Of a DNA stretch of 64,000 nt, positions 21,277 to 64,000 are shown piece after piece. Where the stretch lies: contig DF237091.1 of the NCBI GenBank assembly GCA_000708835.1, forward strand, positions 111,095-175,094, given 5' to 3'. The DNA is from Klebsormidium nitens (lineage: Eukaryota; Plantae; Klebsormidiophyceae). The notes under the pieces are model-generated. The model was not told where the DNA came from. It made no database searches and saw only the letters and a program-made list of their open reading frames with translations. The first letter of the stretch is position 1. The number at the start of each line of letters is the position of its first letter. The translations under genes and the position numbers were made by a program.

Positions 21277-22294
21277 GCCACTTGACAGGAGATATGTCTG
21301 TGATGGTCCTTTATTACCACAATGAAGTCCCACTTGCTTGTCCATTGCTCCCTGGACACAAAGGAATTGAGGGTTAAGAGTATGTCTGCGGGCGACTCTT
21401 CATTTGTTTCGTGAGTTCTTCAGCAACTGCGCTTGCAAATGCTTGTGATGTGCTTGGAAATTTCGTGGAGAATGTTGTTCAGGTTCATCCTAGTTTTGAA
21501 ATTGCATCAGGGGATTTTCTCTGCCAACTGTCAGAGGGCTGTAATGTGTGTGTGCCCTTGTTCGCCTTCCTGCCTCAGCACCATGAAGAGTTTGTAGCCT
21601 GATGTAGGTTTTATTCCATAGACTGTACTTATCCTTAATTAGATAATTTGAAGATGGGGCACACACGAACCTTTCTTAAATGATGTCGCTGACCTGAAGC
21701 TTGCAGCACATCAGCACATTGTGAAGATGAAGGAGGGCACATGAAAGTGGCCTCTTTGAACAACATTTTTTCGATCCAAGCACTGAGGTTTTGTTCAGCA
21801 GGGCCCTGATGCTGATTGTACAGTCAGAATGACAGGTCACAGAACCAGAACCTCACCAGATTGTTTTCCAAAGCTCGACGCTTTGGAACACATTTTGTTG
21901 TTCAATTGTTCTCCAGATTGTTCTTCAACTGACAGAAGCCTACTCTTTGTGCGGCTTGCGACCGTGTGGCAAGTTCCGTCTGAGGATTAAGCACACATTA
22001 CATCCAAGAATGGCTGCACGGCCCAATGACTCTGACCGTGTCCTTTGTTCCAGCCTCTTCATCATATATGTCGCAGAGGCATCAAATTTTTGATGCGGTC
22101 AGGAAATGCGCTCTCAAAACCCGTTCATTGCACCTTCTTCAAATACCAATGTTTGTTTCGACCTACTTTTCCAAAAGAGCAGGACATTGCCCTCTCGCTG
22201 AAAACCATGTGGACAATCAGAACCTCCCTGGAAAAGTTTTGCAGCGCTTGCTGGTCGACGGACTCTCTGTTAAGGCACCAATTCCCTTTCGCAG

Positions 22295-25200
22295 GAAGGA
22301 GAAGGACGATGTGGACCTCTCTGCCAAGGAGACTGACTTGTCTGAGGGCGAGAAGAAGGGCGGCTTCGGCGTCTCCGACAAGCAGCTCGCGCGCATGATG
22401 GAAAAAGACGATGTTCACATCCTGGAGAAGCTCGGTGGTCCCGAGGGGGTCGCCAAGTCCCTGAAAGTCGACCCCCAGGACGGGATCCCGGGCGACGATG
22501 CCGACATCAACTCGCGCAAGGAGATCTTTGGCTCCAACACGTACCCCGAGAAAGCGAGCAAGGGGTTCTTGGTATTTCTTTGGGAGGCGTTCCAGGACGT
22601 GACGCTGTTTGTGCTCATGGTGTGCGCATTCATCTCGCTGGCGGTTGGGATTGCGACGGAGGGGATCGAGAGCGGGTGGTACGATGGGGCAGGTATCCTG
22701 GTGTCAATCACGCTGGTGGTCATGGTGACGGCCATTACGGACTACCAGCAGAGCCTGCAGTTCCAGAGCCTGAACAAGGAGAAGCAGAAGATCTACATCA
22801 ATGTGAGTGGCGTTCTGCTCATTGAAATGGTTGGTAATGTCCCTTTGGAACAAATTCTCTACTTTCACAGCCTTTCTTTTGCCAGCTCTGATGTGATTCG
22901 TTTGCTGACTTAGCAGAGAGGATAGCTCCGGTGAGTCAAACGAATGTGCTTCTTCTTTTTAAAAAAAGCTGTAGATACCATTGTAGATATGAGCAGGCAC
23001 ATGACTTCCAGACCTAGGATTTGAAAGTTGTTTGAACAGACGAGCACAACGGTGCACTCACTCCTCCCCGAGAAGAGGGAGGAAGAACGAGGATGCACTA
23101 CTAACGAGGAGGACAAAGTCGTTTCAGGGCCTCATCTAGACTACTTTCAAAATTACCTTTCACAACGATGCAAATCGAATCATCGTCTGACGTACTCAGA
23201 TCCTTTTACGCAGCAGATCCGAGCTAGAGTAACATCAGTCTACCGAAAAATATGAGCTTGACTGCGGCGACTTGAGGCCACTTACGACATGCTGACGTGT
23301 GAGCTACAGCGAAACTTCACCTGCCAATCAGTCGCAACCTAAGCTAACCCTATGCTGACCAAACCCTGCAGGTCACGCGCGGCGGCCGGCGCCAGAAGGT
23401 CCTCATCTTCGACCTGGTGGTTGGTGACATCGTCCACCTGTCTATCGGCGACCAAGTCCCTGCAGACGGAGTTGTGGTCGAGAGCAACTCTCTGACGGTC
23501 GACGAGTCCCAGATGACGGGCGAGAGCGAGCCCAAGAAAAAGGGCCCTGACGAGCCGTTCCTGATGTCCGGGTGCAAGATTGCGGATGGGGGGGGCAGAA
23601 TGATGATTGTGGCGGTGGGGATGAACACTGAGTGGGGCCGGCTGATGTCGACGCTGAGCAGCGATGATACGGAGGAGACACCGCTGCAGGTAAGGGCGCC
23701 GAGTTCAAAGACACTCAATTATCTCGAGATTACCTCTATGATGATTGAAGCAATCTGCCGATGAATCTTTCTAAAAGTTGTAAATAGCAAAATGCAGCTA
23801 CTGCTGAGCCAACGACACTGCCAGAACACGTAAGAAAGCCTTCGAGGAGGAAGTTGTGCGAGTTGAGGCATGCATGGCGAAAGGGGCTTTACCGCAAAGG
23901 GAGCTTAAACAAGCCAACAAAAGTAGGATTGCGAAGGGAGTGCAGGGGTGTCTGGGACTTGCACGCTTACGACCATTCAAAATCGTGGCTTCTTGTTTCT
24001 GGTCTTAAAGGCGGCATTTCTTGCGAAGGGTCGCCAGCGGAAAGCGATTACTCAAGGAAGCAGTGCCTCTTGCCCCACATCTTTGCCGTCCCAGAATTCG
24101 CTGAAACTTCTTGACCCCGCTTTCCAAGTCAGCGCTTGAACCTATCTCTTGTAAATCCCTGAATTACTCGTACATAGGACACCTGACTTCAGTGCCGAAC
24201 ACAGTTGACAAGCTTGGCCTCCAGATGTGTCGATGATTCTCCTTACCATCTCATAACCCACCCCAAAGCTTCTTCTAACTCTCCACTGATTTCCAATAAT
24301 CTCCTCTCCCAGGTGCGCCTCAACTCGGTGGCGACCATGATCGGCAAGCTGGGCCTCTCGGTCGCCGTGCTCGTCTTCTTCATCCTCATCGGCAAATTCC
24401 TCTACAAGAAGAACTTTGACTTCTCCGACTGGAGCGGGGGCGACACGCTCGAGGTCGTCAACTTCTTCGCGATCGCAGTCACGATCATCGTGGTGTCAGT
24501 TCCCGAGGGGCTGCCGCTCGCGGTCACGCTCACGCTCGCGTTTGCCATGCACAAGATGATGGAGCAGAAGGCGCTCGTGCGCCACCTCAGCGCGTGAGTG
24601 GCAAATGCCGTTCTCCATCAATTGAGCACCTATTCAGTCGACTGCTAAGCGGTTTCATGTCTTTGTTGATCACGGCTGTTGTCTTCTGGGGGTGGAGATG
24701 TGCTCGGCGTTGTGCTTTCTTTTGTGGAGCTTGGGGATGATGGAAATTCGTGTTAGGGATTAGGATTTTGTAAGTTGGGAAAATGAGATGCAACAAGGGC
24801 ACATTGACTCGTTTGGGGCTGCATTCGTGTATCAAAGGCCGAGGTACACTGCTCTGAGCTCAAAAATTTTGACGCGAAGAGGCACAGGTACACTGCTCTG
24901 AGCTCAGAAGTTTTGACGCGAAGAAGCACCCCGAAATGACAAGGAGCCTCCGAGGAAACCTTCGTTTGAACAACGGGAGAGATACCTACTTGGTCGAGGT
25001 ATCAACCTCCAGGTTGACCCGCGACTGAATTTCTTGACTGCAGGCTCTCCTGTATAGGATAAGGTTTCAGAAAACGGACGCGCTAACTTAAATCTGAACG
25101 CCGTTGGCAGGTGCGAGACCATGGGTTCCTCGACCACCATTTGCAGCGACAAGACGGGCACGCTTACCATGAACGAGATGACTGTGGTTAAGGCCTGGGT

Positions 25201-28200
25201 TTCGGGGAAGGTCCACGATGACCCGGCAGGCGCCGTCAAGGAGCTCCCAAAAGAAGCGCTGGAGATCCTTACTGAGGCGATGTGCTACGTAAGAGTCCTG
25301 GAACGCCCACTGAAAGTATCTCTACTTTTCTCTGCGTGTGTTTGATGACATTTCCAGGGACGTTTTGAGACCTGTGATTGAAAGTTTTTTGAGAGGTCTC
25401 TTTCGAAAAACCTTTCGGCGAACATGTCGATGACTCCCTCAGATTGTCTGAGGTGATCAGACCCAAGGTTCTGGAAGCTGTTGGATTCTCGCTTGTCTCA
25501 GGGGGTGTCTCTAGGGGCCCCCAGCAACATCAATACGCCAACAAGGGATTGTGTGCCCTCTGACTTGCAATGTCTGGAAGAAGCTTGTACCAGGCCGATT
25601 TTGGGAATGACGGGCGCCAAGCTTTGCGGTTTTTCAGCGGATATCATGTCTCGTTTCTCTTAAGAAATGATTTCAGGTGTCAGGGAAAAGAATTGGCATG
25701 GTAAATTTGGCATCCTTTTGTTCCTCGTTGTTGGACTCCGACTGTACTTGTGCCGGACCTGAAAGCTCTTGTCAGAAAATGGCTCCTCTTGAAGTGGAAG
25801 CACAAGACTTTCCACTTCTTTGTATGCAAGACCGCTAATGAGCCCAGTCGCCCACAAGCACATCTTGCTGATACCATTCTGACATGTGTCACCCGTCTCA
25901 CAGAACACGTCCGGCGACGTCTACGTCCCCGAGGGGGAATCCGAACCCGAAGTTTCGGGGTCGCCTACCGAGGCGGCAATCCTCAAGTTCGCGCTCGCAA
26001 TCAAAACGGACTTCAAGGGCGTCCGATCGTCCGGCAAGGTCCTCAACACGGAGCCGTTCAGTTCCGCCAAGAAGCGGATGGGAGTGATCGTCGAGAAGAA
26101 TGGGAAAGCGCGCGTGCACTGGAAGGGCGCGAGCGAGATCGTGCTCGGTTTGTGCGACCAGGTGACTGATAACCAGGGCAAGCCGGTTAAGCTAACCAAG
26201 GAAAAGAAGGACGAGCTGCTGAAGGTGATCGAAGACATGGCCAAGGCGAGTCTGCGAACCATCGCGTTTGGCTACCGCGAAGTTTCCTCTCCCGGGGGGG
26301 ATTCTGTACCCGAAGACAAGCTGATCTGCCAGCTGATCGTGGGCATCAAGGACCCCCCCAGACCGGGGGTGAAAAACTCCATCAAGCTGTGTCACAAGGC
26401 GGGGATCGTGGTTCGTATGGTGACGGGGGATAACCTGACGACCGCGCAGGCGATCTCAAAGGAAATTGGGATTCTTGACCAGGGGGGCGAGATCATCGAG
26501 GGGCCGAAGTTCAGAGAGTTGTCGGAGGATCAGATGCGGGATCTGGTGCCGAAGCTGCGGGTGATGGCGCGCTCGAGCCCCACGGACAAGAACCTGCTCG
26601 TCAAGCATCTGCGCGCGCACGGAGAGGTCGTGGCCGCCACAGGGGACGGTGCGTCCTTTGTCTCGCTAGCTCAGCTTGGTATTTAACAATTTTGACTTCC
26701 GAATATGTGAGATTTGCTTAGCATCGTCCATAGTCCAGAATTAATGAAGTTCCTCTACGACAACTCAAACCCGCGGTTGATCTCGATTGTGGGACGCTCT
26801 GGCGGAAAGTTTGCGCGACTGTGCTTGAAGTATGTAGATAAAGTATCCCCGAGGAGTCCAGAATGATCAGCCGCGTGCATCCCAAGCTAGCAACAATTGG
26901 ATTCCGTGTAGAGGCGTCGGCACGACCTCAGCTCCGCAGGTACAAACGACTCCCCTGTGGTGCACGAGGAACGCATCCGGGAGGCTTGCAATGAAGATCT
27001 CCAAGACGGAGGTCGCCAGAAAGAGCACTATATTCTGAACCTCGACCCGTCTCCTCCACTTACAGTCGTTAAGATGAATCTTCAAACTCGCAAGCACGAC
27101 CAACGCTCACTTAACGTGGACCGGCATCTGGCGACCAAGCGTTTGGGGGCGAGTCGTCGCCCCCAAACCCGCAAAGTCTTGCTTCAACCTAGCTTTGAAT
27201 CTGCTTTCCACCAACATTTAACCCGCCCCGCAGGCACCAACGACGCCCCCGCGCTGCACGAAGCCGACATCGGGCTCGCGATGGGCATCGCCGGGACGGA
27301 GGTCGCCAAGGAGAGCGCGGACGTCGTCATTCTGGACGACAACTTCAGCACCATCGTGAACGTCGCCAAGTGGGGCCGCTCGGTCTACGCCAACATCCAG
27401 AAGTTCGTGCAGTTCCAGCTGACGGTCAACATCGTCGCGCTGATGCTCAACTTCATTTCGGCCGCGATCACGGGCGCGGCGCCGCTGACCGCCGTGCAGC
27501 TGCTCTGGGTGAGCGATCTTTGCGGAATCGATTGCTGGGATATCAGGTTACTAGTTGGCTTCTTTTGAACGGCTTCTTATCCAAAAGTCGGTTTAGTCAA
27601 TGCTCGAAGGAACTGCGCATGTGATAGTGGTGCGTGAAGTGTGTCTGGGCTTCTCGACGCTGCACTGCTTGTTTTTGAGACTTGAGCTTTTTGGTCATTT
27701 GTTTCCCCTGCAAATCAAGGTTGATCGTTGTTACTGTACGTGCGCTTGCCTAAAAGGCCCCCAAGCGAGAAAAGCCTCCTTCAGGCGGACTCCCTCAGAC
27801 CGGCTGAGTCCCTGCTTAATAGCTTCATACCATATCTAAACCCACAGCTTCAGCGGCTAGATGCTTCTTTCCATATTTCGTCCATTCCACCTGCTTAACC
27901 AACCTTCAAACCCTGCAGGTTGACCTGATCATGGACACCCTGGGCGCACTGGCCCTGGCCACGGAGCCCCCCACCAACGACCTCGTGACACGCCCAGCTT
28001 AACCACACCCGAACCAGCCCTAAACCCCGCCCCGCTACCTCCTTAACCAACCCTTAAACCCCCGCAGGTCAACCTGATCATGGACGCCCTCGGCGCACTG
28101 GCCCTGGCCACGGAGCCCCTCACGGATGAGCTCATGACAAGCCCAGCGTAACTCGTTTCCGAACCACCTGACAACCGCGGCATTCCACCTGCTTAACCAA

Positions 28201-29686
28201 CCTTCAAACCCCGCAGGTTAACCTGATCATGGACACCCTCGGCGCCCTGGCGCTGGCCACGGAGCCCCCCACCGACGAGCTGATGACGCAAGCCCCCGTC
28301 GGGCGCCACTCGAGCCTCATCACCAACATCATGTGGCGCAACATTTTCGGCATGGCTGCGTACCAGCTGGTGGTTCTGCTCGTGCTGCAGTTTGAGGGGC
28401 GCAAGCTGCTGGGACTCGGCAAGTCGGACCACGACACGCTGGTGCTGCAGACGGTCATCTTCAACAGCTTCGTGCTGTGCCAGGTGAGGGGACGGGGTCC
28501 GTGTTTTCATTGATTGCGACTCTCACTGACGTTCTTCCTAAATCTCATTCTAGTCTATGCCTACGCTCTGCACTTCAAATCTAGAGCACGACACGCTGGT
28601 GCTGCAGACGGTCATCCCAACAGCTTCGTGCTGTGCCAGGTGAGGGGCGATTTCTTTTTTAACCTTGACCGAGTTCTTTGTTGGTGGATCGAGTCACTGT
28701 GTTCGGGCTTTGCACTTGGAAACTGAAAGCCCGGTTGCAGACTCTCATCGTCAACAGATTCATATTATGCCAGGTGAAGGGCTTCAGTTCTGACGATTGT
28801 CGGCCTGTACTGAAGTTCTTTTTTGGTGGTTCGAGTCACTGAGTTTGGGCTTTGCACCTAGGATTAGAGCATTGATGGCCTGGTGTTGCAGACGGTCATC
28901 TTTGATGCATCTTTGTGCTGAGCCCAATGGAGGGATTGGAGAGTTGTCTTTTTCTTGAGATGGTAGATCGCGTAAATGTAGGGTCCCTTCAAGGTCACCG
29001 AAGAGAGGCGGGCAGCTGCTTCTGCTTTTGCGTGTTGGTGACACCTTCCTTCTCAAATCAGGGGTTTCTTGCAAGCCGGACCCGCACTTTTGACAGCTGC
29101 CATGGACGCGTTGTTCTGTGCCGGTTCAATATAGCAGACGCGATCGTTGTGGGCATCGAAAAGGTTTTGAAGTCGTGGCAGTAGATCAATCATGGTCGTT
29201 GTGAAGAACCCGGTCTTGGACAGGGGTCCCACCTTTGCGCCCCCGGTACTGTGCTCGCAACTTGACGGTTGAGTGACTGCAGGGCAATGTTGCTATAATG
29301 TCGAATCTTTCTTTCACGCCTTTCTGCAGGTCTTCAACGAGTTCAACGCCCGCCACACCGAGCGCATCAACATCTTCCGCAACCTGATCGGCAACCACGT
29401 CTTCCTGGGGGTCATTGCATTCACAGTCCTGGTCCAGTCCCTCCTGGTCCAAGTGGGGGGCTTTGTGGGTCAAATCGCGTCCACTACCCCCCTCTCCCTG
29501 AAATTCTGGGCCATCTGCGTCGGCCTCGGTTTCCTCAGCATGCCCATTGCCGCGCTTTTGAAATGCGTGCCTGTGCCTCGCAAGCCCATGTTCGCGCGGT
29601 CGAAGTCGGCCCGGCGCCGTGACGGGGGTTCGGATTACCACGCTCTGCCCGGGGGGGAGCAGAACGGCGGCGCGGGTTCAGTCTAG
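22295..29686 (+). CDS. ACA: P2B-type (ACA/PMCA-like) Ca2+-transporting P-type ATPase, 5'-partial
   Basis: Exons 22295-22802, 23372-23689, 24313-24593, 25111-25288, 25904-26648, 27234-27508, 28217-28483, 29330-29686, all phase-consistent. Motifs: [89 protein letters not shown]. Confidence 0.96.
24842..24929. repeat. 44-bp tandem duplication in an ACA intron
   Basis: aggtacactgctctgagctca.aa.ttttgacgcgaaga.gcac occurs twice in tandem. Confidence 0.9.
27880..28216 (+). repeat. Two extra copies of the ACA exon-7 acceptor plus first 27 codons
   Basis: cttaaccaacc.t.aaaccc.gcag|GT..ACCTGATCATGGAC starts at 27919 and 28068, upstream of the functional exon at 28217. Both copies end in an in-frame TAA. 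Confidence 0.92.
28484..28905 (+). repeat. Decayed ~140-bp tandem copies of the ACA exon-7 end plus donor
   Basis: gtgctgcagacggtcat...tgccag|gtga recurs near 28640 and 28775, with a remnant near 28885. The intronic block gagtcactg.gtt.gggctttgcac is also repeated. Confidence 0.85.
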
Positions 29687-31205
29687 AGAGTGTGTTGCGG
29701 GGCATCGTACAAGATAGCACGCAGGGTTACGGTCGTGATCAAGTAAAGATGAGTTGGCAGTCGCGAATGCTGCCTTGTCGGATCTAGAATCAGCGTTTGT
29801 GGATGCCCGTTTTGGCTAGCCGTACAGAATGATGTTTTCGAGGGCACTTCATTAAACACAGGGATCCCAAGGAAGTCCTAGATTGTCGTCTGGACCGTTG
29901 GACTAAGTGAGTCCCAAAATCAATATCATCCGTTTTGACCCATATACTTTGCTTTTGAATATCTTGATCGACGGTAAACGATGCATGCCAGCGGGTGACT
30001 GAAAGCAGCACAACTTGGGCGGCGCAACCGGCCCGGCCGCCCTCACTGCACTGCATCAATACACATATGCTGATCAGTGCACCATGCGCTAAGTTCCATG
30101 CGTACTTTGCTTGAATACCGCGCGCACTGACTCAGTATATGTGGGACGTGCATAAACCAAGCTGCCATGGGCCAATTTATCAAAAAGTGTCAGGCTATAG
30201 ATTAGGCCGCGGCGCGAGTGAGCAGTACGTCCTGTGGGGCTGCAAAAGAGGGAGAAAAGTACCGTCTGGAGTACAAGGTTTCGTTGTGCAGGCGTGACTG
30301 ATACACTGAGCCTGATCGACGGCTCGGTGGCTGAGTCGCCTCATGTCATAAAATGAGCGGCCTGGTGCATGCCTAGCCTGGCCCCATGCTGAAGTTAGGG
30401 AATGGCAAAAATGTCGAACGTCCCGTCAAGATTCCGCGTCACGCCCCGCGCCCTTCCACGCCTATTCCTGGCATCATCGCGAATGATTCATGGTCGTGTA
30501 CTGAATATCATATTATTGTATATGCAGCCTATATATTACCGCAAGCGCTCCATGACGTTCCCAAACACAATCGCTCGTCTAGCTAGCTCAGCGGATTCAT
30601 CGCGGCAATCCGCACACTTATGCACGATTATGCTATTGAATCGTTAGCATACTTTTTCGGCCTGTCACTATTGACGCGACACACACTATTAAATGACCTT
30701 ACTAAGGAACTTGTTGAACCGAACGATCGCTGCTGTCATGACACGGCGAGATACTCCAAACGGCCGCGTGTCCAGCAAGCTAGAGTCTTGCTGCAGCTCA
30801 AAACATAGGTCTTACCAATCCTGAGGGCCAGCACCAGACCGGCCGCGGCTTCAACAAAGCGTGCAAAGAACCGAAATGCTGGTACAACTGCCACGCGCTA
30901 TAATTGGGTACAATATGATTAAGTACAATTCTTGTCACGAACTCGAAGCCTGTTGGAAAGTACCCAGTCGGCTTACGTCAGCGCTCGAATGTCTGGCATG
31001 TTACGTTGTTGAAAGGCGTGTACTGAGAGCTCGGTCGAAGTGGCATCTACACTCAAGTGAATCGAACCTCGAAATCTTGCAATCAAAAAACACTCTCGGA
31101 CAGTTTAAAAACGAAGAGACGGTTTTATAGTACATAGTGCACAAGCGCCCAGGAGAGCTTGGTTCTGGCTCAACTGATGCGACTCGAGATATGCCATACG
31201 TTGTC

Positions 31206-36564: not shown

Positions 36565-38575
36565 CTAATCTCGCTCACGGTAAAGCCGCATCGTCGTTTG
36601 CACAATTCTGACGTACTCGTAGAAGAGTTTGGACTGAACTCCTTCCAGGCCGTCCCGGCACACCCGGTTGCTTCCCGTCAGGTTGTTGCAGGGGCTTCCG
36701 CCGACGATGAGATCGATGCCCCCCTCTTCATCGACCATTTGCCTCAGCTTTTCGTCTGTTATGGTCGTCACGTCACCCAGGCGTTGGAGTGCGTCAGGCG
36801 GCTTCTCGTTGGATCTCCACCTTAGGGAAACGGCCTGTACAAGAGATGCTCGTGGATCTCAGAAAGCTTATTCAATTGTGTTCTACGATGTGTGTCAAAG
36901 TTGTCCACCTATGTTTCATTGGTGGAGCCCGGGAGAACATTTGAGCGCTCCTTTTTGGTCCCACATGATGAACGGCCGGTGGTAGAAACTCCAAGCCAGA
37001 TAAGAATGAATCACTCAGAGATGTTGAAAGATTGCCTGTACGACCGCTGTTTGGCATCGACTGGGCATTGCTAAGCGTAGTTCGAGCACAAACGAATGTC
37101 AGAGCTACAATTTTGGGTCAACGTCCTGACACGCCGCTCACAGACACCGGCGATCAAAAAACGAATCCCTTACATATTGCCGCTATCTTTCTTCGTCCAT
37201 ACATTTTCAAAGAAGGAAGGGGAAGCCGTTTCATTAGCGGCTTGCCTCTGAAGGAGTCGTTTACATAGTTCCAGGTTGAACCCAGTCACTTTCAGCTGAA
37301 AGGAATCGAGCTTACCTCTTGAGCGTCCGCATTGATCTCGGACGTCCAGTACCGCCGCACCTTGATCCCCAGTCTGTCCAGGGCCACCGCCGCCGCCCCA
37401 ATGCCGTCGAAAAGCGAGAGAACGCTGAGCCCGTCCGGATGCGCCTCTCGCTCCCGCCCCCGTAGCGGCGACAGCAGATGCATCACCGTATCCACTTGAA
37501 ACGACTCCCCGAGCGCTTTCACCCTCTCGACGCTCGAGCCAAAGCACGCGGTGTGGTCTTCCGGGAAGCCCATGACCGTCTCGATCTCGCGCGCCTCCAG
37601 CCGCCGCAGCCGGCCGCCCGCCACCCACGCCAGGTTGTGGTACGCAATCATTTCTAGAGACTTGGCGGGCGGGGCCGCCTCCCCCAGCGTTGCCAGCTCG
37701 TTGTTCAGAAACGCCAGCCGGCGGGGCCAGATCGTCTGCGTGTTGATGCAGCGCAGCTTCTTGCGCTTGTCCCAGGGGGGAGTGCCTCGGAGGTGGCTGG
37801 GGGGCAGCACCGACTGCATGGTGATGAGCTCTTTCCTCGGGTCGGGCACCGGTGTGCGCGGGTGGGGGGGCAGGTTGTGCACATACTTGCGCGCGCGCTG
37901 ACATGCCGAGAAGAGGTCGGAGTTGAGCGCCTCAGCGGGCAGCTCGAGCTCTTTCTCGATGATTCTCCAGGTGCCACGTGGCGCGTTGACTACGTTCTCG
38001 AAGAGGAACATGGGCTTGGCGAGCTGGCCGTCCGTCCAGAGCGCGTCAGCCTCGTGCTGACGTGGCGCCGCCCCATTGGGTCCGCATGTACTGGGGCCCG
38101 GGTTTGCTTCGGCTCCGTGCTGACGTGGCGCTCTCTGATTGGTTTGGCGGGTGCTTGGGCCAGGGTCCGCAACAGGGGCTGCTTCCAAGTCGGAATCATC
38201 ATCGCTCTCAATCATTGGCTGTGAGCCGAATTGCGCAAATTGCTCTGCAATCAGCCGATCCGCCTCTTCCTGCGGGTTGCGGCTGTCAAATTCATCCTGT
38301 AGACTGTGTGCTATGGCTAAATCCAGCTGATCGTCTTCTGGAGCCGCTTCGCTGCTCAAAAGATCCGGCCCACGGAGGCGACGTGCCTCAGCTTCTTCTG
38401 CCTGGTTGATTTCATCGAGCACCGCATCAAGGTCCCGGACTGAATCTATCTGCTCACGCAGCTCCACTCGCATCCTTGCATCCTCCCGGCAGACGGTCAC
38501 ATGTGCTTCGTACTCGGCTGGCAGTCGGAGGTCCGGATAAGCGCAGACCTCGCATGCGCGGACGTCACGTGCCAT
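36565..38575 (-). CDS. DRM: DRM-type (circularly permuted) DNA cytosine-5 methyltransferase, 509 aa, with N-terminal ubiquitin-binding-like motifs
   Basis: Exons 38575-37316 and 36834-36565 (phase 0). Motif order is VI (FLFENV), VIII (RARKYVHNLP), IX (RRLEAREIETVMGFPEDHT), X (KALGESFQVDTV), I (VLSLFDGIG), II (SEIN), III (GDVTTI), IV (VGGSPCNNL), which is the DRM permutation. Confidence 0.92.
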
Positions 38576-41379
38576 GGCGGAATGACGCACGTGTGGATAG
38601 GCGCCCTCCCAACTTGAACTCGAATCTTCTAGGTACTGTGCTTGTCAGCTTGGCAGTCTGCTAGACAATCTGCGCATTAGTGCTTAAAGACACTAGTGCC
38701 TCAAATGAGATCCTAAGACTCTTGCTTTGAAATATGATTAATTTGGGTTTAATGATCTAGTAGCCATCCAAATGGCGGAAGGCCAGGCAAGGAAAATGTT
38801 CAAATGAGAGTCTGTAAGACCATGAGCTGCCGTCTGCTGCCAAAGCCCCACCTGAGACTCATCACTCCCTTATCGTTCCCACTGTTCTCATTGTCGAGTC
38901 CTAGCACGCACAAGACATATATAGGTAGCTGCTGGGAGGCTCCAAGGGAGGGGCGGTCCGAGTCACTACCCCCAAAGGTTGGAATAGAGGCGCGTCTGCA
39001 CGCTCAGAAACGAGACCCTATGCTAAAACCTCTCCTGATCCATTTATGGTACCCTTTGGCATAACCCGGCCGCTGAATGCCTCGTTTTGAACCCCTTTTC
39101 TAAAACCAAACCGTTTCATCTGTCTCGTTTCCTCTCGCTTTTCGACTATCTGGAAGCCAATTTGACCAATTTGTACGACAACGAGACGAAAAGCACTCCG
39201 TTTCTTGCTTCTGACTCAAAATCAGAGTCAGAAACCAACCACGTATGCCACTTCTGGCCCTACCACCAGCCCGGGCTTTTGCAATAGCCTATCACATAAC
39301 CAGGCAAGCATTTAATGGGACCCTTCACCTATAACCGGCGTCATGGCTGGAGGCAGTTCTCATAGCCCTTCGATAGACGCGGCTCTCTTCCATGACATGC
39401 CAATTTCAGGGGGTAGTGACCGCCCCTCCGCTCCAAGCCCCTCGAAGCAGCGGCCGGGCACCTCTGACTGTACGGGGTGTAACACTTGCAGGCTGCTCTG
39501 GCCGCCTGTCGTTACTGTCGCAGAGGCCTGGCTGCAGCGCTGCGAGAGCGCTGCAATGCATGATGATAGGTAGGTATACTGTCTTGTTTTCTCGACTCGA
39601 TCTGCGAGACCTGCTGCATGAGGCTGTGGACGTCCCTGGGGCCAAGACTGCGAATCCGTCGACGTTTCAATAAGTTATAAGCCGTCGATCAGTAACTTAA
39701 TCTGATTCAACTGAGCAGGGGGGAATCTAATCGGACGGTCACCGGGCCAATCGGACGGCTGGCTCTGCCGCCGTCCAGGATCGGATTGATGCGCCAAACG
39801 GGGCGCAGAGCGCCCCGGGGCAAATCCTGGCGCCCCCGGGCGGAAGCCCGGGGCGCCAGAGCGCCCTGGGCCGCAGGCCCCGCCTACTTTTGAGAAGTAC
39901 TAGGATCCAGGCCGCCTCAACCGGGAACTCTTGAATTTGATTTCCAAGTACAGATTATAAGAGCAATTGCACATATGAGGACACAACGGAAGCCCATATG
40001 GTTCCAGGAGGTGGAGATAAGCACTTGCAGTGAATTGAAAATGCTACGAATTTCAAGTCGAGCTCTCTACACTTAGCCAAGTTTCATGATAAATCTGCAA
40101 GGATATGCTTCGATAAAGGCAATTGTTCCTATAGTAGGACCTGCTTTGGATACGAGGGCACGGATTCTTTTTGACTTTTTGCCGACTGCTTGTTATACGG
40201 TCCGTATACCGTAGTCTGTAGACAGACGTCTTGAGGCACAGGAGGCAGCCCAGGACCGGTATGCACGAATTCGGCTCGGTTAAACACAGCTTCCGCCAGA
40301 ATGCCTACTGTACCGGGCGCTGGCGCCCGGGCTTGGGCGCCCCAGGCAAGCTGGTCAGCGCCCCGGGGCGAAGCCCAGGGGCGCCACGGCACCTCCGGGC
40401 AAAATCCTGCTAGAACCCCTGGTAGAGCAACCGTCGGCGTTGAACTGCAATCCGGCGAAGAGTAACTTCATGTCTGGCCCAGTCGAAGTAATCTGACAGT
40501 CGGTGAGTCGGCTGTTGCAACCTCTGCAAGTTGCATCATGCAGCGAAGTGTGCGGCAGCCAGCTGGCCCTACCTAATCACAGAATACAATACTGTAGGCA
40601 ACCCTACCACCAGACTGCTGGACTGCCATGCTAAGGTAGGTACTACGGTACCTACACCGACAGTTGCTGCTCAGTCATGATTGATGCGCACTTTGCACTG
40701 AACGAATCCTTTGGTAGGGCTGCTGTAAGCTCACATTGCGCATTAACAGCACGCTCATGCACTTGCCGGTAAAGCCAATATTGTTTCAGCTCTCAGCTCA
40801 TGATCTTCTTGCAAGCTAAGGATTCCTTGAAGAGAAGGGGCGCGATACTGGACACGTGACGATCAGTAAGCTGTGCACAATGCGTAATAAAGGTGCACAC
40901 TGCACAGCACGTGGACGTCATGAACGCTGCACTGGCAGCCTGATAATTGGACGCCTAAGCCACGACTAGGTAGCTAGCTAGCTCAATCTGGCCAATACCT
41001 ATAAGTACAAGTGCTTCAGGTTTCAGGATTCCTAAGATTTAACAGTGAGCATGCAGGATAGGATAGGTACATCTGAACAAAGACAGTTTCTAACTGCTGT
41101 AGCGTCAGAGCACAGCTGCTGCTTGTAACTGAAGTCGGCTGATGTATAACTCACAGCTGGTGGCGGTTCATATACTTCAACTTCAGCAGCTGGGCGTCGA
41201 CTACCTACCGTATCCCAACATACGGTGTACCTAGGCGGATGAGTCCTAGCACAAGTCCTGCACACCCTTGCGATTGCAGGCCGTCCTCGGCCCACAGGTG
41301 ATCATCCCACTCAACCCACCATGACAGTCTCAGTCGCCTAGCTTCAAGTAAGAAGAAACAAGATCCTTTCGACCTGCAG

Positions 41380-44300
41380 GCCTACTTTGAGTACCGTCCT
41401 TTGATGAAAGCGAAGCAGCAAATTGAAGAAGGCAGGTTGGCAGACATTCCTGCTGGCAGATATATACCCAAGTCTTTCCTGCCGTCGTTCAATGCTTCTT
41501 GCACCTCTCCCGCCAGGATGAATCCCATTGCTGCCAAAACGAGTCCTCATCTGGCCGACTCTTTTGGCTTCTGGACAAATAAGGGAGGTGTAGGGAAGAC
41601 AACGCTTTGCTATCATGCGCTTATCAAATATGCGCAACAGCACCCTTCAAAGAAAGTCCTGGTAATAGATGCCGATCCACAGGCGAACCTATCGATGCTG
41701 CTGCTCAACTCTGTCAGAGCTAAAGTGAGAGAGGATGGCACGGAGAGTCCAACGGAGTGGATTAGAAATGATGGGAGTCAGACTATTGTGAGCCTTCAGA
41801 GGGAGGCGGTTGATGACGACGGTCAATGTCCACGCACGATTGTGGGCTACATTATGAGTTACGGGGGCATCCAGCCAGTCCTGCCGCTTCCCAGCTTTGA
41901 CAGATTCCTGGTCCATGTGCACACCTACAACCCACAGCTTCCCGAGAATATCCATCTCCTGTGCGGGGACTCGAATCTTGAGATCCTTTCCGCTCTCATG
42001 GTGGTGAACGCCAAGAACACGGTTTCCAATTGGATTATGCTCCACCGCATCCTGGAGAAATTCATCACGAGTTTTGCCGACCAGCAGGGTTTGCAAGGGT
42101 CCCAAACGACGGCGTTCATTGACACCAATCCCGCCTTTACAATCTACACCGAGGCAGCTCTTGTGGCCACCAAGAAGCTCATCATCCCAGTCAACTCCGA
42201 CGACTTTTCAGTGGAAGCAGTCAGGAAAATGTTCTCCACACACTGTACGCCACTGCGCCCATTGCAGGGCCCTTCTCTAACGTTGCGCAAGACGTTGGTG
42301 TCTTTGCTGCAAAGGCCACAGCAAACCAGGTGAATCTGCCGAAAGTTCACCTCCTCGTGCAAAACAACACCAAGATACGGGAGACCAGGGCCGTCCAAGC
42401 AACAGCAGTCATGGGCTTGAGGCTGGTAGAGGCGTTGCAGGAAGGGTATAGAGGGCATTCTCAGCACTTCACGGAGGCAGTGCCTGTGGCTGCAGACAAC
42501 GACGGACTCTTCAAGCAGGCATACCTGCTGGAGTTTAAGGACCTCCATGGTGCAGGGATCACAACCGCGCACTTTGGTGCTCCGCTGAGCTTCGTGCTGC
42601 AGGCAGACACGATGGACGATCCAGTAAAGGCTCGCTTGAGAAGAGCAATCGGTGAGTACTTTGGAAAGCACTACAAAGGGGGCTCCGCAATGCAGCCCGC
42701 TGGAGAAGCGGTTGAGGCCCTCGTGCAAGCAATGACGAGGCGGCCAAGCCAAAGGATGGGCCTAGTCAACGGCGCGGGTCGGGCGGGTAAGCATGGCAAA
42801 GGGGGCGGGGGAGGGGGAGGGGGCGGCGGGGGCGGCGGCGGGAGCGGAGGTAAGGGCAGCGGCGGCGGCGGCGGCGGCAAAGGCGGCAAAGGCGGCAAAG
42901 ACGGGGTCGGGGGCGGGACCGACAGTGAGCAATGAAATTTCCGGATATTTTTTCCACGTTTCAGAGCAATCATACGCAGACTCTGTTGTCAGTCAACACA
43001 GCCAAAAGAATCGCAGCAAATGCTCCCATATACGGTATCCTGGACAGTATATTGTAGATGACTTTTTGTTGAGGCGGATCAAAGGCAAAGGCTTCCCGTG
43101 ACGCTGATTTCTGGAAAGACTCGTCTGTTTGGAGCATTTTTCGATGCAAGCCCGAGCTTAATGACAAAGCGTCTCTGAAGCCCTGCACCCAAACGTCCGC
43201 TTTGCGAGCCAAGAGTAACCTTCTTCACCTCAAACTCTGTAAGTGCTCAAAGTGGTGTTCATGTCACAAGCAAGGCAGACTTCTCAGATACGAGTGAGTC
43301 GCACATGTACAACAGATCAGGATACGGAAAGAGAAAAGAGATTAACAAAAAGACGTTTCTCCGTCTATGCGTCTGCGAACAGGGAAAATGGTCTTCCCTT
43401 CATGACAAACGCGCTTCATTGCAGACGATTCCGACGATGACAGGCCGTTGCGACCTCTTTCGTCCCCTTCCCCCAAGCCGAAAAAGCCGAGCACGAGTGA
43501 AAAGAAGGGGGATGGCAAGAAGGCGCAGAAGAACGGTGAAGACCATGGTGAGTTGTACTCTCATAATTGCGAAAAGCAGAGTTAGCTCGAAAGGAAGTGC
43601 CATGCATTGTATTTGCATAAGACCAACTCTTAGCAGCAGCGCTGACATTCTTGTGACATCACTTGGTTGTGCAAGCGGTCTAGTGCTTCGACGGGGGTGC
43701 GGCCAGAACGGGAGGCTTGCGCTCCGTTTAGAACTCACAAATATCCTCATATGTACTCGGACAATTTCTGCATCGCGGACTTCCTTGAAAAGAGCACAGA
43801 TCTGCAGAATTCACCTTCATTAAGGAGCGCCTTGATCAATAACCTTGCGAAGCAGTACGATCCCCTCTCAAAGTCGTCAGGCCGTTACCTCTGTTCTTGC
43901 GCGTTCCGTGCAGTTCGGTCAGCCGTTGCCATGCTGGGCAACAAACTGCTGCTGAAGAAGCTGAAGAAGCTGGGCGTCGACACCAATGGCATCAACGAGC
44001 GCCAGAACCTCGATAATCTGCTGATGAAAGCACTGCCGTCGAAAGAAGGTAACGGCAGGGGGGGTGAGGATGCCGGGGGGCCCGAAGGCGGGGCTGGCGC
44101 CGGAATCAAGGCCGGTGAGCAATCAAAGTCCCGAATCCAGAAGGGTGGGATTGCTTAAAGCATTGACCTAATGGAATCAACACTCAGCGGAATTGGATCT
44201 ATTGCATGCTCCTCTTCGTTCTGTGCCGAATCTGATGAAAGGGCCTTTTTTTCTGGCGGCTTAAAGGCAAATGCTTCAAGCAAGTTGCTGTGACACCAAC

Positions 44301-46568
44301 TCTTCGACGAGAAGGTGTGTCTGTGCCAGTCTGGAGCAGCTTTGATCAGCAAGCGCAATCCCAAAGGACGAAGCCTCTCTGAAGCCCTGCGTCACTCCTC
44401 CATCGTGCTCGCCGGACCAACAATAGCCTTCTTCACCTTAGAGTAGTATGCTGGTGCTGATCATAGTGGAATTTTATGGATCATAAGCAAGGCAAACTAT
44501 CCCAGGTTCGAATAATGCAAAGTGACTCATACGGGATCTAAAAAGAGAGCAATCAGGAGTAAATTAATGTCTCGTCTATGCGTCTGAGAACTGGAAAAAA
44601 AATCCTTTCCGTAAATAGCAAATGCTCTTTGTTGCAGATGAGCCCGATGATGACAGGCCGTTGCCGCCTTCCTCGGCCGCTACCCCCAAGCCGAAAAAGC
44701 CGAAAACGAGTGAGAAGAAGGGGGTCACGAAGGCGCGAGAGAACGGTGTAGAACATCGTGAGTTGTACTCTTATAATTGCGAAAAGCAGAATCTGCTCGA
44801 AGGGAAGTGCCATGCATTGTATTTGCATAAGTACAATCTAAACGCAGCGCGGACCCCCTTGTGACGTCACTTGGGTGTGCAACGGCCCCGCAACGGGTAC
44901 AGAGCAGCCTCGTCTCTGGTGCAGCCATTGCGCTCAATTTCAAATACACAAATATCCTTATCCTTATACGTACTCGGACTTCTTTCATCGCGGACTTCCT
45001 TGAAAAGAGCACAAATCTGCAGAATTGACTTCATCGAAGAACGGTCTTAATCAATAAACTTGCAAAGCGATACAGTCCTTAAAGTGGTCAGGCCCTCTTA
45101 ATTACCTCTATCCTTGCGCGTTCCGTGCAGTTCGGTCAGCCGTTGCCATCCTGAGCACCAAACTGCTGCTGCAGAAGCTGGAGGAGCTGGGCATCAACAC
45201 CTTTGGCATCAAAGAGCGCCAGGACCTCAATAATCTGCTGGTGGAAGCACTGCAGTCGAAAAGAGGTAAGCAAGCGCCTTATTACTCTGCCAGGACTCAC
45301 CATGCGAGTCCCTTCGGCCCCTGGTCCTGCTTCATATTCTCAGTGGGAATTCTGATCTAGTGCTGTCAGAACTGCGTCTTGGAACTGTCACAAGTGCTGT
45401 AGTGCTTGATCCTGCAGAACCGTCTTCGGGTTTCTGATTCCAAGTCTTTGTTTTGTTGCTCCACGAATGCGGTTTTCGATCCGTTTTAAAACGCTCGATT
45501 ACAGGATCTGGGTGTCATCTTGCTGTAGCCTCTTGAGCCAAGTGTTAAGGGCCTTCAGATAAGTGCATCAACATGATCCTTCTCTTGATGGTCCCTTCGT
45601 CATTTCTTCCCCCAAGAAGGATTCACCATGGCGACGTAGGTTGAGGCCAGTCTCCGGAAGTACAGGAAAAACCTGCTGTCTCAACCAGCGGCCACGGAAG
45701 TTTTCCGAAATGCAACCGGAGCCTGGCTTTCTCTGCCTGAGCACACTTATCTAAATTTAGATTCCAATTGTCTCAAAATCTCCACAGCGGAGAAGTCGGC
45801 CACAAAGCAAGGGAAGGGAGAGAAAACCCCGAAGCCGAAGAAGCGGAAAACCTCAGAGTCAGATGGCAAAGGAGAAGGTAAGCAGCAAGATCCTATCCAC
45901 TCTGCACTTCATGCTATGCTCTGTTCAGGAGGAACATGGACGCAGGTGCAAAGACCGTGTGTAGAATATAAAGCGAGCTGCAATGTGTTGGTGCACGGCT
46001 CGTTTGTTAGCGACATCGACGGGCGACGTATCGATTTTTCGCCGCATCGAACTGCTTTTGGAACACGTTCTGCCAACTTTCTGTTCTGGGAAGAAGCCCA
46101 AAGTACTGCTTGCGAAACTGTCGACTATTGGTTCGTTCGCACTGCTAGTCTAAAACTTCTTCCAAGGCCTCCAATGTCCACCAATCTGCTTCGAGCGAGC
46201 CAAAAGTTCAAAGTGCATGCCTGCATTAGCCTGTGTATTGCCTTCAACTGGACCCTTGTAGGATCTTCAGAGTGGGCTTTCGGTCTCCTAGGTGGTGGGG
46301 TCTTCAATTAGATGCGGAGGTTTGGTTGATGCTTCATGAGATTGAAAGTTACAAGCACCAGCGGAGATACCTCATGTACTGCTATCCATGAATAAATGCC
46401 ACGGACTATTATTCTACACATCAGTACTATTCGAACCTTTTGGTAAAAGGTGCCGAAATCTTCGACGCTTTTTTAATTCTCGGCTAAAGAACAATTGGCG
46501 AAGCCCTTCCCAAATCGAAATCACCCGCACACTCTGCAGGTCCCAAGAAGAGAGCTAAGAAGGAGTAG
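41380..46568 (+). CDS. ParA/Soj-family (SIMIBI) ATPase fused to a Gly-rich linker, two basic + SAP/HeH-like modules and a Lys-rich tail; one 2-nt frameshift in this assembly
   Basis: Deviant Walker A FWTNKGGVGKTT, A' LVIDADPQANLS, B FIDTNP. Exons ~41380/41404-42924 (frameshift at 42237-42243), 43425-43547, 43914-44048 (or -44114), 44638-44757, 45131-45265, 45788-45877, 46540-46568. All six downstream introns are phase 1 with canonical sites and internal exon lengths are multiples of 3. Ends GEGPKKRAKKE*. Confidence 0.8.
43050..45300 (+). repeat. ~1.2-kb internal tandem duplication (two exons plus their introns) in the ParA-fusion gene
   Basis: Paired sequences at offsets of ~1185-1220 nt: 43425/44638 (ttgcag|a.ga..ccga.gatgacaggccgttgc), 43914/45131 (ttgcgcgttccgtgcag|ttcggtcagccgttgccat), and intron blocks such as tactcggac..ttc..catcgcggacttccttgaaaagagcaca.atctgcagaatt. 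Confidence 0.9.
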
Positions 46569-60431: not shown

Positions 60432-63400
60432 TCCCCTCCTGAGCCCGTGTCCACAACAAGGGCACACCTTACTACCTGTTTGGCTGGCGATCCTCCAGCG
60501 CTCGTCCACCCATGCACTGAGCACAGAACCAGTCCCCGTCAGGCACTGCTGACAAGGGACTGGCCAGACACTCTAGGTGCCAGCCTGCCCCGCAGCCGTC
60601 GCATGCAACAGCATGCGCGCTGCGCCAGTCGCCTTCCCGCAGCGCATGCAGGCAAAATCAGCCGACGGCACTGCCAACCTGGGGTCAACTCGCCCATCCA
60701 CATCTGCGCGGTGACAAGGAGCGCACCGCTCCACGTGCACCCGCACTGTCCGCGCGTCTGCTCCCTCCAGCTCCAGCACGCCGTTCCCCCCCACTGAGCG
60801 CACCCTCAGAATCCGCGCCCCCGCTCGCGTGTCCAGCGTATCCACCATCTCCCGCTGCAAGTAAACATAGTCTCCCACCTCGTAACGCACCACCTGCGGC
60901 TTCCACGCCCCACTCCTGGTCTTAGCATACCGCAGCGTGTCCCTGTGCTGGGCGATCTCCAAATTGCCCATCGCCATGGGCACCCACTTCTTGAACAGCG
61001 CCGCGCGCTCCTCCACCAGCGCCACCAGGCGAGCCTCGTCATCCAGGTCCAGCGACTCCTCCACCCTGACCTTGATGGCGCCAGGCACCACCGGCTCCCT
61101 GCCATGCAACAGCTGGTACGGGGAGAACCCCGCCAGAGAGTGCTGCGCACTGAAATTGTATCCCATGGCGATCCATGGCAGATACAAATGCCACTCCTCT
61201 GCGGGGTGCCCCAGGCACCACTTGCGCAGCGCCCGTTTCACCACCTGAACGATGCGCTCGCTCAACCCGTTCGCCTGCGGGTGATAGGCAGAGGTCGCCC
61301 GGTGGTCAATCAGCGCAGCATCCAGACACGCTTGGAATTCCCCCCCAAACTCACCGCCCCTGTCTGTCACCGCCTTAGCGCACGCCCCATATCGCGTCAA
61401 CACCTCTCGTGTGAAGACCGCAGCCACCGTGGACGCCGGCTCCTTGTCCACGGTGGGCGCCAGGACCACAGTCTTGCTGAAGTGCTCCACGAGCACCAGC
61501 ACATACTGATTCCCCCTCACCGACTTGGGGAGCGGTCCTGCGAAGTCCAACCCCCACCAGTAGAACAAGCCTCTGATGGGCAGCGGGTGGAGCGCTGGGT
61601 GCTTGGCATTGAAGGTGGCACGCACCCTGTCACATGCCTCGCAGCCCCTGACCGCATGCTCCACCTCCGCCGACAGTCCTACCCACCAATAGTGGGGACG
61701 CAGAAGGGACACCGTCTTGCGGACTCCCATGTGCCCAGCGCGCTCATGCAGGTCCCTAACCAGCTGCGCGCGCACCGCTGGCCGCGGAACCACCCTCGCC
61801 TCCCCGCTGGCTAACCTCCTGACCAAGTGGTCCTGCCGCCACTCGTACCCACGGGCCCGGTGATGCAGTCTGTCCCACTCCCGCGGGCTGCACCCTGCAG
61901 GCAGCCCCTCACCCCGCAGCACCGCCAACAGCCCCTGATCCTCCCACACATCTACTGGCGGCTGCACCCCTGTTCCTGGCCCCAGTCCCTGCTCCCCTTC
62001 CGGCTGCTCACCAGGCTGCCAGGACAGGCACGCCGCCGCCGACCACGCGAGCGCCCCCGCCTCCTCCAAGTCGCCCTCCTGCCTCACCCCAGCCCAGTCC
62101 GCGCTGCTCTGCTGGGGGAACCTACTCAGATAGTCCATCTCGTTGTCAACCCCCGGCTTGTGCTTGACTTCAAAATCGAACTCACTGAGCATGAGCGCCC
62201 ACCGCGCCAACTTCCCCGTGAGCTTGGAATTTGTCAAAATCCACTTGAGCGGCTGATGATCGCTTTCCAGCTGAAAGCGCTCACCATACAGGTACTGCCT
62301 TCAGAGCCGCACAAAGTACACTGCAGCTAAGAGCTCCCCCTCGAAGCTACTGTACCGCGCCTCCGCCTCATTGCAGCTGCGGCTCCCAAACGCCACCACC
62401 CGCTCAGCTCCGTCCGTATCCTGCTGAAGCAGAACCCCCCCTAGGCCCTTCTTGCTCCAGTCACAGCGCACCTTGAAAGGCCGCCCCCTCTTTGGCAAGA
62501 CCAGCACCGGACTCCCCTGCAGCGCCTGCTTCAGCGCTGTGAACGCCTGCTCCTCTTCCTCTCCCCAGCGCCAGGGGGCCCCCTTCTTGGTCAACGCATT
62601 CAGCGGGGCCGGCAGCCGGCTGCAGTCGGGGATGAACTGGCGGTAGTAATTTACCACCCCTGAGAATGCCTTCACTGAGGTCACGTCGGTGGGTCGCGGC
62701 AACGAAGCAATGGCCGCCACCTTGGCCACCTGCGGAGACACCACCCCCGGTCTCAACCACATGCCCAAGTATTCCACCGAATCCGCCCCGAAACAACACT
62801 TCTCCGGGTGGCACTTAAGCCCCACCTCCCGCAGCCGGTCGAACACCCTCTGCACCAACTCCATGTGCTCTTCCAGCGTCTCGCCCCCCGCCACCAGCAG
62901 GTCGTCTATGAAGCTGCGCGCAAACCCCTCCAACCCCCTGAGCGTCCTGTCAATCGCCCGCTGAAACCACGCGCTCGCGTTCCTTGCCCCAAACGGACAC
63001 CGCTTCCAGCAATACAGTTTGCTGCTGGACCAGAATGCCAACTTCCGCCGGTCCTCCTTCCGCACCACCAGCTGGTGAAACGCGCCCCGTATGTCAATGG
63101 TGGAGTAGAACTTGGCATGGCACAGCCCCTCCAACACCTCCTCAGGCAGCGGCATCGGGTACCGATCCTGCGCTGTCTGCTCATTCACCCGGCGCAGATC
63201 CGTGCAGAACCGGGAGAGCTTCCAATTCCCCTCGGGATCCTTCTTGGCTGCCATCACTGAATTGGCTGCGATGTCGGAGTCACACTCCTCAATGATCCCT
63301 GCCCGTTCCAGCTCCCGGCACCGCTCATCCACCAGCTCCCATGTTTTCGCGCTGTGCTTGCGCGGCCTCTCAAAGATAGGTTGATCCGTTTTCAAGTCCA

Positions 63401-64000
63401 GCTGGACCTCAAACAACCTGAACTCCCCTATCTCCTCTAGGCTAAACGCAAACAGGTCCCTGTTTTTCTCCACCACGCCCGCCGCGTGCTCCTTTTCGCC
63501 CTCCTCCAGCTGCGAACCCACCACCCAGCCTGACGCCATCTTGCTCCCCTGCGGCAGCTCCACCCCCGCAGCGCTGGCAGCCGCCCCCAGCGCCCCCACA
63601 CTGGACATCTCACTTCCCTGAAGGGGGCCCTGCCTCAGCATCACCAGCGCGCGCCCCTGTCGCCCTGCCGTTGGTCGCCCCGACGACAGCAGCGCCAGCG
63701 CGCTCCCCTCCAGCTCCAGCCGCCCCAGCGCCAGCAGCGCCAGCGCGCTCCCCTCCAGCGCCAGTCGCCCCAGCGCCAGCAGCGCCAGCGCGCTCCCCTC
63801 CAGCGCTAGCCGCCCCAGCGCCAACAGCGCCCGCCCGCACCACTGTCCCCATTTTAGCCACAGGGGGGCTCACACGGCTGGGCCCGCCGCGAGCACCCCC
63901 CCGCTCCTCCTTCCCAGCTGCCACCGCCAGCTGTCCAATGCCTGAGACAGAGGGGCTCACACGGCTGGGCCCGCCGCAAGCACCCCCCCGCTCCTCCTTC
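60432..64000 (-). mobile_element. Degenerate Ty3/gypsy LTR retrotransposon, pol region (RT, RNase H, integrase, PHD finger); 5' part outside window
   Basis: RT: RFCTDLRRVN, STIDIRGAFHQ, CPFGARNA, SFIDDLL. RNase H: VRCDWS, FEGELLA, SDHQPL, interrupted by an in-frame TGA at 62303-62301. Integrase: HERAGH..CEAC, WGLDFAGP, VTDRGGEF, NGLSER. Domain order RT-RH-IN indicates gypsy. A C-terminal PHD is restored by a 2-nt frameshift near 60605 and ends at 60472. Confidence 0.95.
63690..63824 (-). repeat. 45-bp coding tandem repeat x3 upstream of RT (ALGRLALEGSALALL)
   Basis: Visible in DNA and in the translated pol frame. An additional ~84-bp duplication lies at ~63860-64000. Confidence 0.85.

Follow-up and report, generated by a model that had tools for sequence, protein, structure and literature searches.

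We analysed a 64,000-nucleotide (nt) stretch of the Klebsormidium nitens genome (GenBank assembly GCA_000708835.1, contig DF237091.1, positions 111,095 to 175,094 of the forward strand), hereafter the window, in which positions 41380 to 46568 carry an open reading frame (ORF) for a ParA-type ATPase, followed by short exons for a basic tail with two SAP-like modules. The original prediction, made from the DNA letters, had joined the two into a single protein. On balance, and with modest confidence, we read the locus as two adjacent units instead, namely a ParA gene of a eukaryotic clade and a separately transcribed gene for a basic, SAP-like protein. The first unit would be a nuclear gene of one exon and 471 codons that encodes a P-loop ATPase of the ParA family from a eukaryote-only clade, with intact deviant Walker A, A' and B motifs, a C-terminal helical extension of the type found in a family of ~356-amino acid (aa) proteins, and a poly-Gly end; it would be broken in the assembly by a 2-base CA slippage and intact in another isolate. 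The second unit, starting less than 500 bases downstream, would encode a basic protein (pI ~9.9) of 232-251 aa from a tandemly duplicated exon pair, one exon type giving an acidic/basic K/P-rich stretch and the other a 45-aa helix-loop-helix of SAP/HeH/Rho_N type, with two KKRK-type clusters towards the C-terminus and five internal introns spliced as predicted. In the other isolate this second unit would be transcribed alone, the sequence proposed as intron 1 remaining in the RNA and supplying an in-frame ATG at 43367, with an antisense spliced RNA over ParA; a ParA-tail fusion through the junction 42924>43425 would then be an alternative or ancestral isoform at most.

Two sets of short-read contigs were compared with the window. 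X5 derives from the run of a second isolate, is labelled as a different organism and differs from the window by four single-nucleotide polymorphisms (SNPs) in ~2.9 kb; the X1 contigs agree with the window, and X1 is probably the source of the assembly itself. The ParA ORF lies on the plus strand at 41518-42935 (471 codons if read in the X5 allele), with ATG 41518 as its likely start (ATG 41404 being the alternative) and TGA 42933-35 as its stop. Reading the sequence, we found every motif that had been claimed for it. The deviant Walker A motif NKGGVGKTT with its signature lysine is at 41578-41604 (plus strand, FWTNKGGVGKTT) and its columns are invariant in the family alignment; VIDADPQAN and FIDTNPAF lie downstream, and the Walker A' Asp (D51) and Walker B Asp (D194) match invariant family columns. 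The poly-Gly end is encoded by a GGC-rich repeat (42793-42887, plus strand) that breaks all short-read contigs: X1 stops at 42792 and resumes at 42888, and X5 has no contig over 42738-42940. A GTGAGC donor is found at 42925, three codons ahead of the TGA.

The ParA domain had been described as intronless and contained in one ORF, which does not hold for the window. Its frame is shifted by an extra CA in a CACACA run (42237-42238, plus strand), so that the domain is split between frame 1, closed by a stop at 42331-33, and frame 0, which holds the homologous part from ~42237. Both letters are absent from X5 and neither from X1; removal of two bases at 42237 yields ...KMFSTLYATAP..., in agreement with the homologs, and an uninterrupted frame over the domain exists in the X5 allele alone. 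Of the 42 columns with at least 90% conservation in a 32-sequence family alignment, 41 are retained, on both sides of the break, and the frameshift must be recent because the conserved columns downstream of it are still kept. We also considered a 23-nt GT..AG stretch (42245-42267) as a frame-restoring intron and rejected it: it is far below the size of the confirmed introns (366-662 nt), its removal would delete the conserved LYATAPIAG, and X5 simply lacks the two bases. No exact-product record of the frameshifted ORF pieces was found in public assemblies.

The tail is encoded on the plus strand by six exons. Exon A1 (43425-43547; 3' junction confirmed) is acidic then basic and reads DSDDDRPL...PKPKKPSTSEKKG; exon B1 (43914-44114, both junctions confirmed) encodes SAP-like module 1 (43916-44050) and then a Gly-rich extension. 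Their paralogs are exon A2 (44638-44757), which contains PKPKKPKTSEKKG, and exon B2 (45131-45265), which carries SAP-like module 2 (45133-45264). The DDDRPL, PKPKKP and EKKG stretches of the original prediction are those of exons 43425-43547 and 44638-44757. An exon with the PKPKKRKTS cluster (KKRK; 45788-45877) and a last coding exon (46540-46568) with GPKKRAKKE and the stop TAG 46566-68 complete the series. The lengths of the first five exons are multiples of three, and therefore every intron is in phase 1. Joined to base 42924, the tail exons form one open frame of 232 aa that ends in GPKKRAKKE, with a pI of 9.9, 40 Lys and 12 Arg; a fully spliced fusion in the X5 allele would measure 701 aa with ATG 41518 as its start and 739 aa with ATG 41404.

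The exon pairs arose by a tandem duplication (42925-45265, plus strand) whose unit comprises donor, intron, exon A, intron and exon B, the two copies spanning 42925-44114 and 44115-45265. Intron 1 is 77% identical to intron 3, intron 2 is 85% identical to intron 4, and the exons are 84-87% identical, with an in-frame 3-nt indel between A1 and A2. Between the modules (43916-44047 versus 45133-45264) 16 codons differ, all by non-synonymous and none by synonymous changes (12 at first, 4 at second and 2 at third positions); in the flanking introns the divergence is 15-23%. Module 1, with KKLKKLG, is basic, and module 2, with QKLEELG, is acidic. The pattern could be due either to diversifying selection or, the sample being small, to chance. 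We tried the 65 nt ahead of the exon B1 donor as a copy of the Gly-rich end of ParA, and their alignment proved no better than that of shuffled sequences (183/2000); what the two regions clearly share is only the first ~22 bases of the intron.

The X5 contigs behave as RNA and bear directly on how the two parts are expressed. A 1471-nt contig contains five GT..AG joints at predicted sites (43546>43913, 44113>44637, 44757>45131, 45263>45786 and 45875>46538), and introns 2-6 have a depth of zero. Five of the six proposed junctions are confirmed in this way; the one on which the fusion depends, 42924>43425, occurs in no X5 contig. Over 42941-43546 this contig follows the genome without a break, so that the proposed first intron (42925-43424, plus strand, GTGAGC...TTGCAG, phase 1) is present in the RNA over 42941-43424 and its splicing was unobserved. 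This sequence also gives the tail a start of its own in X5. An ATG at 43367 lies in the tail frame and is blocked in the window by TGA 43403-05, the sole in-frame stop upstream of exon A1; in X5 an SNP (43404 G>T) turns this TGA into TTA (Leu), and the spliced contig has a 251-aa ORF that starts at this ATG and closes with the stop at 46566. Two of the five allele differences, the CA insertion and the TGA at 43403, hence disrupt an ORF of the window allele.

Over the ParA ORF the X5 RNA has the opposite polarity. The ParA-region contig (mean depth 18.4, versus 57.7 for the tail contig) skips 218 nt at 42307-42524, with CT..AC ends that correspond to a minus-strand intron GTATGC...TTTGCAG; removal of this segment would shift the sense frame to a stop, and an unspliced sense version of it is found in no X5 contig. 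The RNA over the ParA ORF is therefore mainly antisense and, since the sense middle part of ParA is absent while the tail reaches a depth of 57.7, most of the tail RNA does not come from a ParA-tail mRNA. The comparison of the alleles and of their RNA suggests that in the X5 isolate each ORF works as a unit of its own. The GC-rich segment 42738-42940, which separates the antisense contig on its left from the tail contig on its right, could hold a bidirectional promoter.

These observations speak against the originally predicted fusion. That the ParA exon is spliced from 42924 to 43425 onto the tail, with a ~700-aa nuclear, DNA-associated protein as the main product, seems to us unlikely, if deserving of serious consideration: no contig makes the join, the intron-1 sequence is in the RNA from which the other introns are absent, sense ParA RNA is missing where tail RNA is abundant, the X5 allele provides a separate start, and no homolog elsewhere has such a tail. 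In its favour, the frames are phase-compatible, the window allele has no ATG of its own in exon 2, and even the tail exons are missing from the 19 RNA-labelled runs of the reference organism, in which the stretch is almost wholly absent; this would be consistent with one fused mRNA undergoing nonsense-mediated decay in the frameshifted isolate.

Further points weigh against the two-unit reading. Exon A1 opens exactly at a good acceptor, all six introns fit the ParA frame (phase 1), and only three codons separate the donor at 42925 from the ParA stop. Both the donor (18/22 bases) and the acceptor of the proposed intron 1 have paralogs at the ends of the proven intron 44115-44637, because the donor-intron-exon A-intron-exon B unit was duplicated in tandem; as the copied donor worked at once, the original probably worked too, which suggests, as far as sequence comparison can tell, that the intron-1 site was spliced when the duplication arose. 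In the X5 contig six more ATGs precede 43367, an unusual leader unless the true start is further downstream. The evidence is also a single, unstranded RNA data set from another isolate, in which the gap 42738-42940 is unassembled, and Logan contigs drop minor paths, so that they could conceal a fused isoform with at most a quarter of the depth. That such an isoform is made at a low level or in other conditions is possible, with a likelihood that we would place well short of even.

With its two broken frames and its near absence from the 19 RNA runs, the reference isolate's copy of the locus is probably inactive. A further explanation is that the whole is a decaying remnant, i.e., a ParA pseudogene whose tail and antisense RNAs are non-coding by-products of a GC-rich bidirectional promoter. 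We regard this as improbable. It would account for the frameshift (42237) and the stop (43403) of the reference allele, for the scarcity of RNA from that organism, and for duplicated exons that are no better conserved (84-87%) than intron 2 versus intron 4 (85%). However, X5 keeps both the 471-codon ParA and the 251-codon tail ORFs open, 41 of the 42 family-conserved residues remain, A1 and A2 are separated by an indel that preserves the frame, and both modules keep their hydrophobic core and the G..T.G..ERQ motif while surface residues differ.

The ParA ORF matches Pfam AAA_31 (E 9.6e-17, 61.9 bits versus a cut-off of 27) and CbiA (38.9 bits versus 25.4). The NCBIfam model NF041546 (ParA_partition) gave 47.7 bits against a cut-off of 180, and the remaining ParA equivalogs of NCBIfam also stayed far under their cut-offs. 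Database searches retrieved a large family of ~356-aa 'ParA family proteins' from many bacterial phyla, with ~40% identity end to end; the homology spans both frames of the window ORF as well as the C-terminal extension. The closest homolog, P0001 (438 aa, 50% identity), is encoded on a gene-poor, eukaryote-like metagenome contig. When the family profile was compared with the PDB, the uncharacterised 3pg5 ranked first (4.5e-17) and Soj and ParA chains next (~1e-13), above ArsA (8e-12), Get3 (~1e-5), NifH (~1e-5) and MinD (~6e-5). An AlphaFold model of P0001 (pLDDT 88) has McdA, Soj and ParA as its top Foldseek matches (TMt 0.69-0.74), ahead of MinD, with an added long C-terminal helical extension. 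Both rankings bear out the earlier typing as ParA/Soj rather than MinD, Get3 or Nbp35. Judged from its sequence, the window ATPase is of the ParA/Soj type but is not a canonical partition ParA.

The resemblance to the characterised Soj/ParA/McdA proteins (1wcv/2bej from T. thermophilus, 6iub from H. pylori and 6nop from Cyanothece), the best characterised sequence matches in the PDB, extends to the deviant Walker A lysine, the A' motif Asp-Pro-Gln-x-Asn and the Walker B motif hhhDxxP and, in the P0001 model, to the fold. In contrast to them, the window family has an insertion after the A' motif, a ~100-aa C-terminal helical extension and no known ParB or parS partner, and genes of the window type are encoded in eukaryotic nuclear genomes. 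No ParB-like gene was noticed among the larger ORFs of the window, where no search was aimed at ParB-like genes. Bacterial members of the ~356-aa family (Xanthomonas, Phocaeicola, Moorena and Sorangium) have the same conserved columns as the window protein, and the nearest solved chain is 3pg5 (DIP2308), whose function is unknown; most bacterial members read D-x-CPQAN where the window has DADPQAN, and the window protein adds the poly-Gly end. ParA proteins bind DNA or another surface non-specifically as ATP-dependent dimers and, by analogy, the Klebsormidium ATPase would act as an ATP-dependent dimer on DNA or on another surface.

Some bacterial contexts were recorded. In Phocaeicola coprophilus and relatives (8001-9071 of the fetched loci) the ~356-aa ParA stands at the edge of a defence/mobile island that holds a DndD-like gene, a DUF87/FtsK-like ATPase, GmrSD_N, IS66, IS21 and TIR genes, and a Xanthomonas member adjoins TonB-dependent receptors. 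PADLOC returned P-loop-level matches only for the ParA family, with no real match.

The original prediction had further proposed a horizontally acquired gene without eukaryotic counterpart, nested within a bacterial ParA clade, and neither part agrees with our results. Named eukaryotic homologs occur in two Micractinium species (including M. conductrix), Chlorella ohadii, C. sorokiniana, Chromera velia, the transcriptome of a chrysophyte, the coral Oculina patagonica and the mussel Mytilus coruscus; together they form one clade, and its genes have no obvious organelle presequence. The Oculina homolog is a single-exon gene beside an ankyrin gene on a 38-Mb chromosome, and the context of a related sequence, P0142, was examined on a 2-Mb contig. 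In an unrooted maximum-likelihood tree (43 rows, LG+C20), one branch with support of 99/95 separates the 21 named bacteria from 11 rows that are eukaryotic or eukaryote-like. P0001 is the sister of the window protein (100/98), and an 'algal' subclade (99/95) unites the pair with sequences of Chlorellaceae and of chrysophyte type. From the tree split and the eukaryotic homologs it follows that the ATPase is neither nested in a particular bacterial clade nor unique to this alga; on this comparison a lone recent transfer does not explain it. That the eukaryotic clade as a whole came from bacteria is plausible, though beyond what an unrooted tree can show.

The annotated eukaryotic homologs ('ATPase' or hypothetical) belong to the same family and clade and have only ~30-35% identity to the window protein. 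Those of algae (437-551 aa) carry low-complexity C-terminal extensions, some of which finish in a basic cluster; the long low-complexity C-termini of P0121 and P0155, for example, end in ..GRKRTRT and ..TNKRRRQ... Ends of this sort are a hint that a basic C-terminus may be widespread among the eukaryotic members, including those that lack SAP-like modules. Neither the modules nor the K/P-rich exons were found in any of the eukaryotic homologs, and a tblastn search with the tail had no match in the P0001 contig or in the other fetched bacterial and metagenome loci. A contig of 63% G+C, VFQQ010003122.1, probably from another alga, contains at 1552-3052 an intron-split family homolog whose best piece shares 60% identity with the window protein; tail-like sequence was not found nearby. 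In the literature we found no described eukaryotic ParA of this kind.

For the second unit, the SAP/HeH assignment of the 45-aa modules was upheld in part. An AlphaFold prediction (AF2, from an alignment of the module and of bacterial repeat units described below) gives a helix at 2-19, a loop at 20-28 and a helix at 29-39, with a pLDDT of 80, and the best small-domain superposition is on the SAP-like domain of MANF (root-mean-square deviation 1.2 Å over 32 residues, TMq 0.63, Foldseek E ~6); the SAP-like domain of CDNF is also among the best, and the Rho N-terminal domain scores lower. Language-model features pointed to HeH/LEM, SAP and Rho_N clusters as look-alikes, with low scores. These likenesses carry no statistical weight, however: the VIA Z of 5.0 is level with that of unrelated helical hairpins, the structural scores do not rise above those of a generic helix-loop-helix, and Pfam has no family for either module at E<=1, SAP (PF02037), HeH and Rho_N included. 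Like SAP, HeH/LEM and Rho_N domains (e.g., the C-terminal SAP-like domains of MANF and CDNF, 6h9u_B and 9h0c_B), the modules have ~35-45 aa and an L..L..LG[VI].T.G pattern, with a loop and a second amphipathic helix in the predicted structure, whereas a canonical SAP has a shorter spacing from loop to helix. The SAP/HeH reading of the predicted fold is reasonable but not established.

Among 1.84 billion representative sequences, the only relatives of the modules were four bacterial signal-peptide proteins (P0217-P0220, E 5e-14 to 8e-4), which carry 3-8 tandem 'EKAKKxGIDTNGLTxEQ' repeats with sub-threshold matches to Rho_N, SAP and SinI only. The core K-K-L-G-[IV]-D-T-N-G is common to both. P0217-P0220 are secreted or membrane-anchored, of unknown function and unrelated to the tail outside the motif, and the likeness may be convergent. 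Apparently significant PDB matches of the module profile to TAL effectors were discarded, for they were sums of 9-residue GLTPEQV matches that came from the bacterial repeat rows and not from the window module.

The monopartite nuclear localisation signal (NLS) core K-[KR]-x-[KR] is present in KKPK, KKRK and KRAK, all in K/P-rich stretches predicted to be non-helical. From its KKRK-type motifs the tail protein is probably nuclear, and it would bind DNA or chromatin. Bacteria and archaea use ParA-type ATPases to position DNA and large cargo; in eukaryotes, to our knowledge, only plastid MinD and the distant cousins Get3 and Nbp35 have been studied. The Klebsormidium locus and its relatives represent a distinct ParA family encoded in scattered eukaryotic nuclear genomes and, should any member work on chromatin or on a nuclear or cytoplasmic surface, this would constitute a new eukaryotic positioning system. 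Nothing would have pointed more strongly to a DNA-linked nuclear role than a fusion to SAP-like modules; because the RNA does not support the fusion and the reference copy is broken, the case is weaker than at first reading. It is unlikely, though worth keeping in view, that, in isolates with intact alleles, an upstream promoter drives a spliced mRNA for a chromatin-tethered protein of ~700 aa, arranged as ParA-polyGly-(K/P-rich + SAP-like)x2-NLS, and that the eukaryotic clade is an unrecognised nuclear or cytoplasmic positioning system.

The original prediction had argued against contamination, and here our findings concur. That bacterial contamination or an assembly chimera placed a bacterial parA beside algal exons is hardly credible: the ParA part has no introns and many bacterial homologs at ~40% identity, but the independent X1 and X5 contigs pass from algal flanks into the ORF, its nearest relatives are sequences of the eukaryotic clade and not bacteria, and contamination is ruled out by neighbours that are ordinary nuclear genes. 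These include a GTF3C1-like gene and, on the plus strand at 22000-29700, the exons of a P-type cation ATPase with domain matches to E1-E2_ATPase, Cation_ATPase and Hydrolase. A long minus-strand exon (37295-38644) matches the C-terminal part of a C5 cytosine DNA methylase (E 1.7e-5), and the X5 antisense contig runs from the ParA ORF towards this exon, ending at ~40917. The window contains 949 N; the low G+C of 20001-22000 (down to 0.24) probably marks an assembly gap just upstream of the P-type ATPase exons. At its right end a Ty3/gypsy-type retroelement pol (60576-63869, minus strand) shows RVT_1, RT_RNaseH, Integrase_H2C2 and rve domains, 61-65% G+C and a strong negative GC skew.

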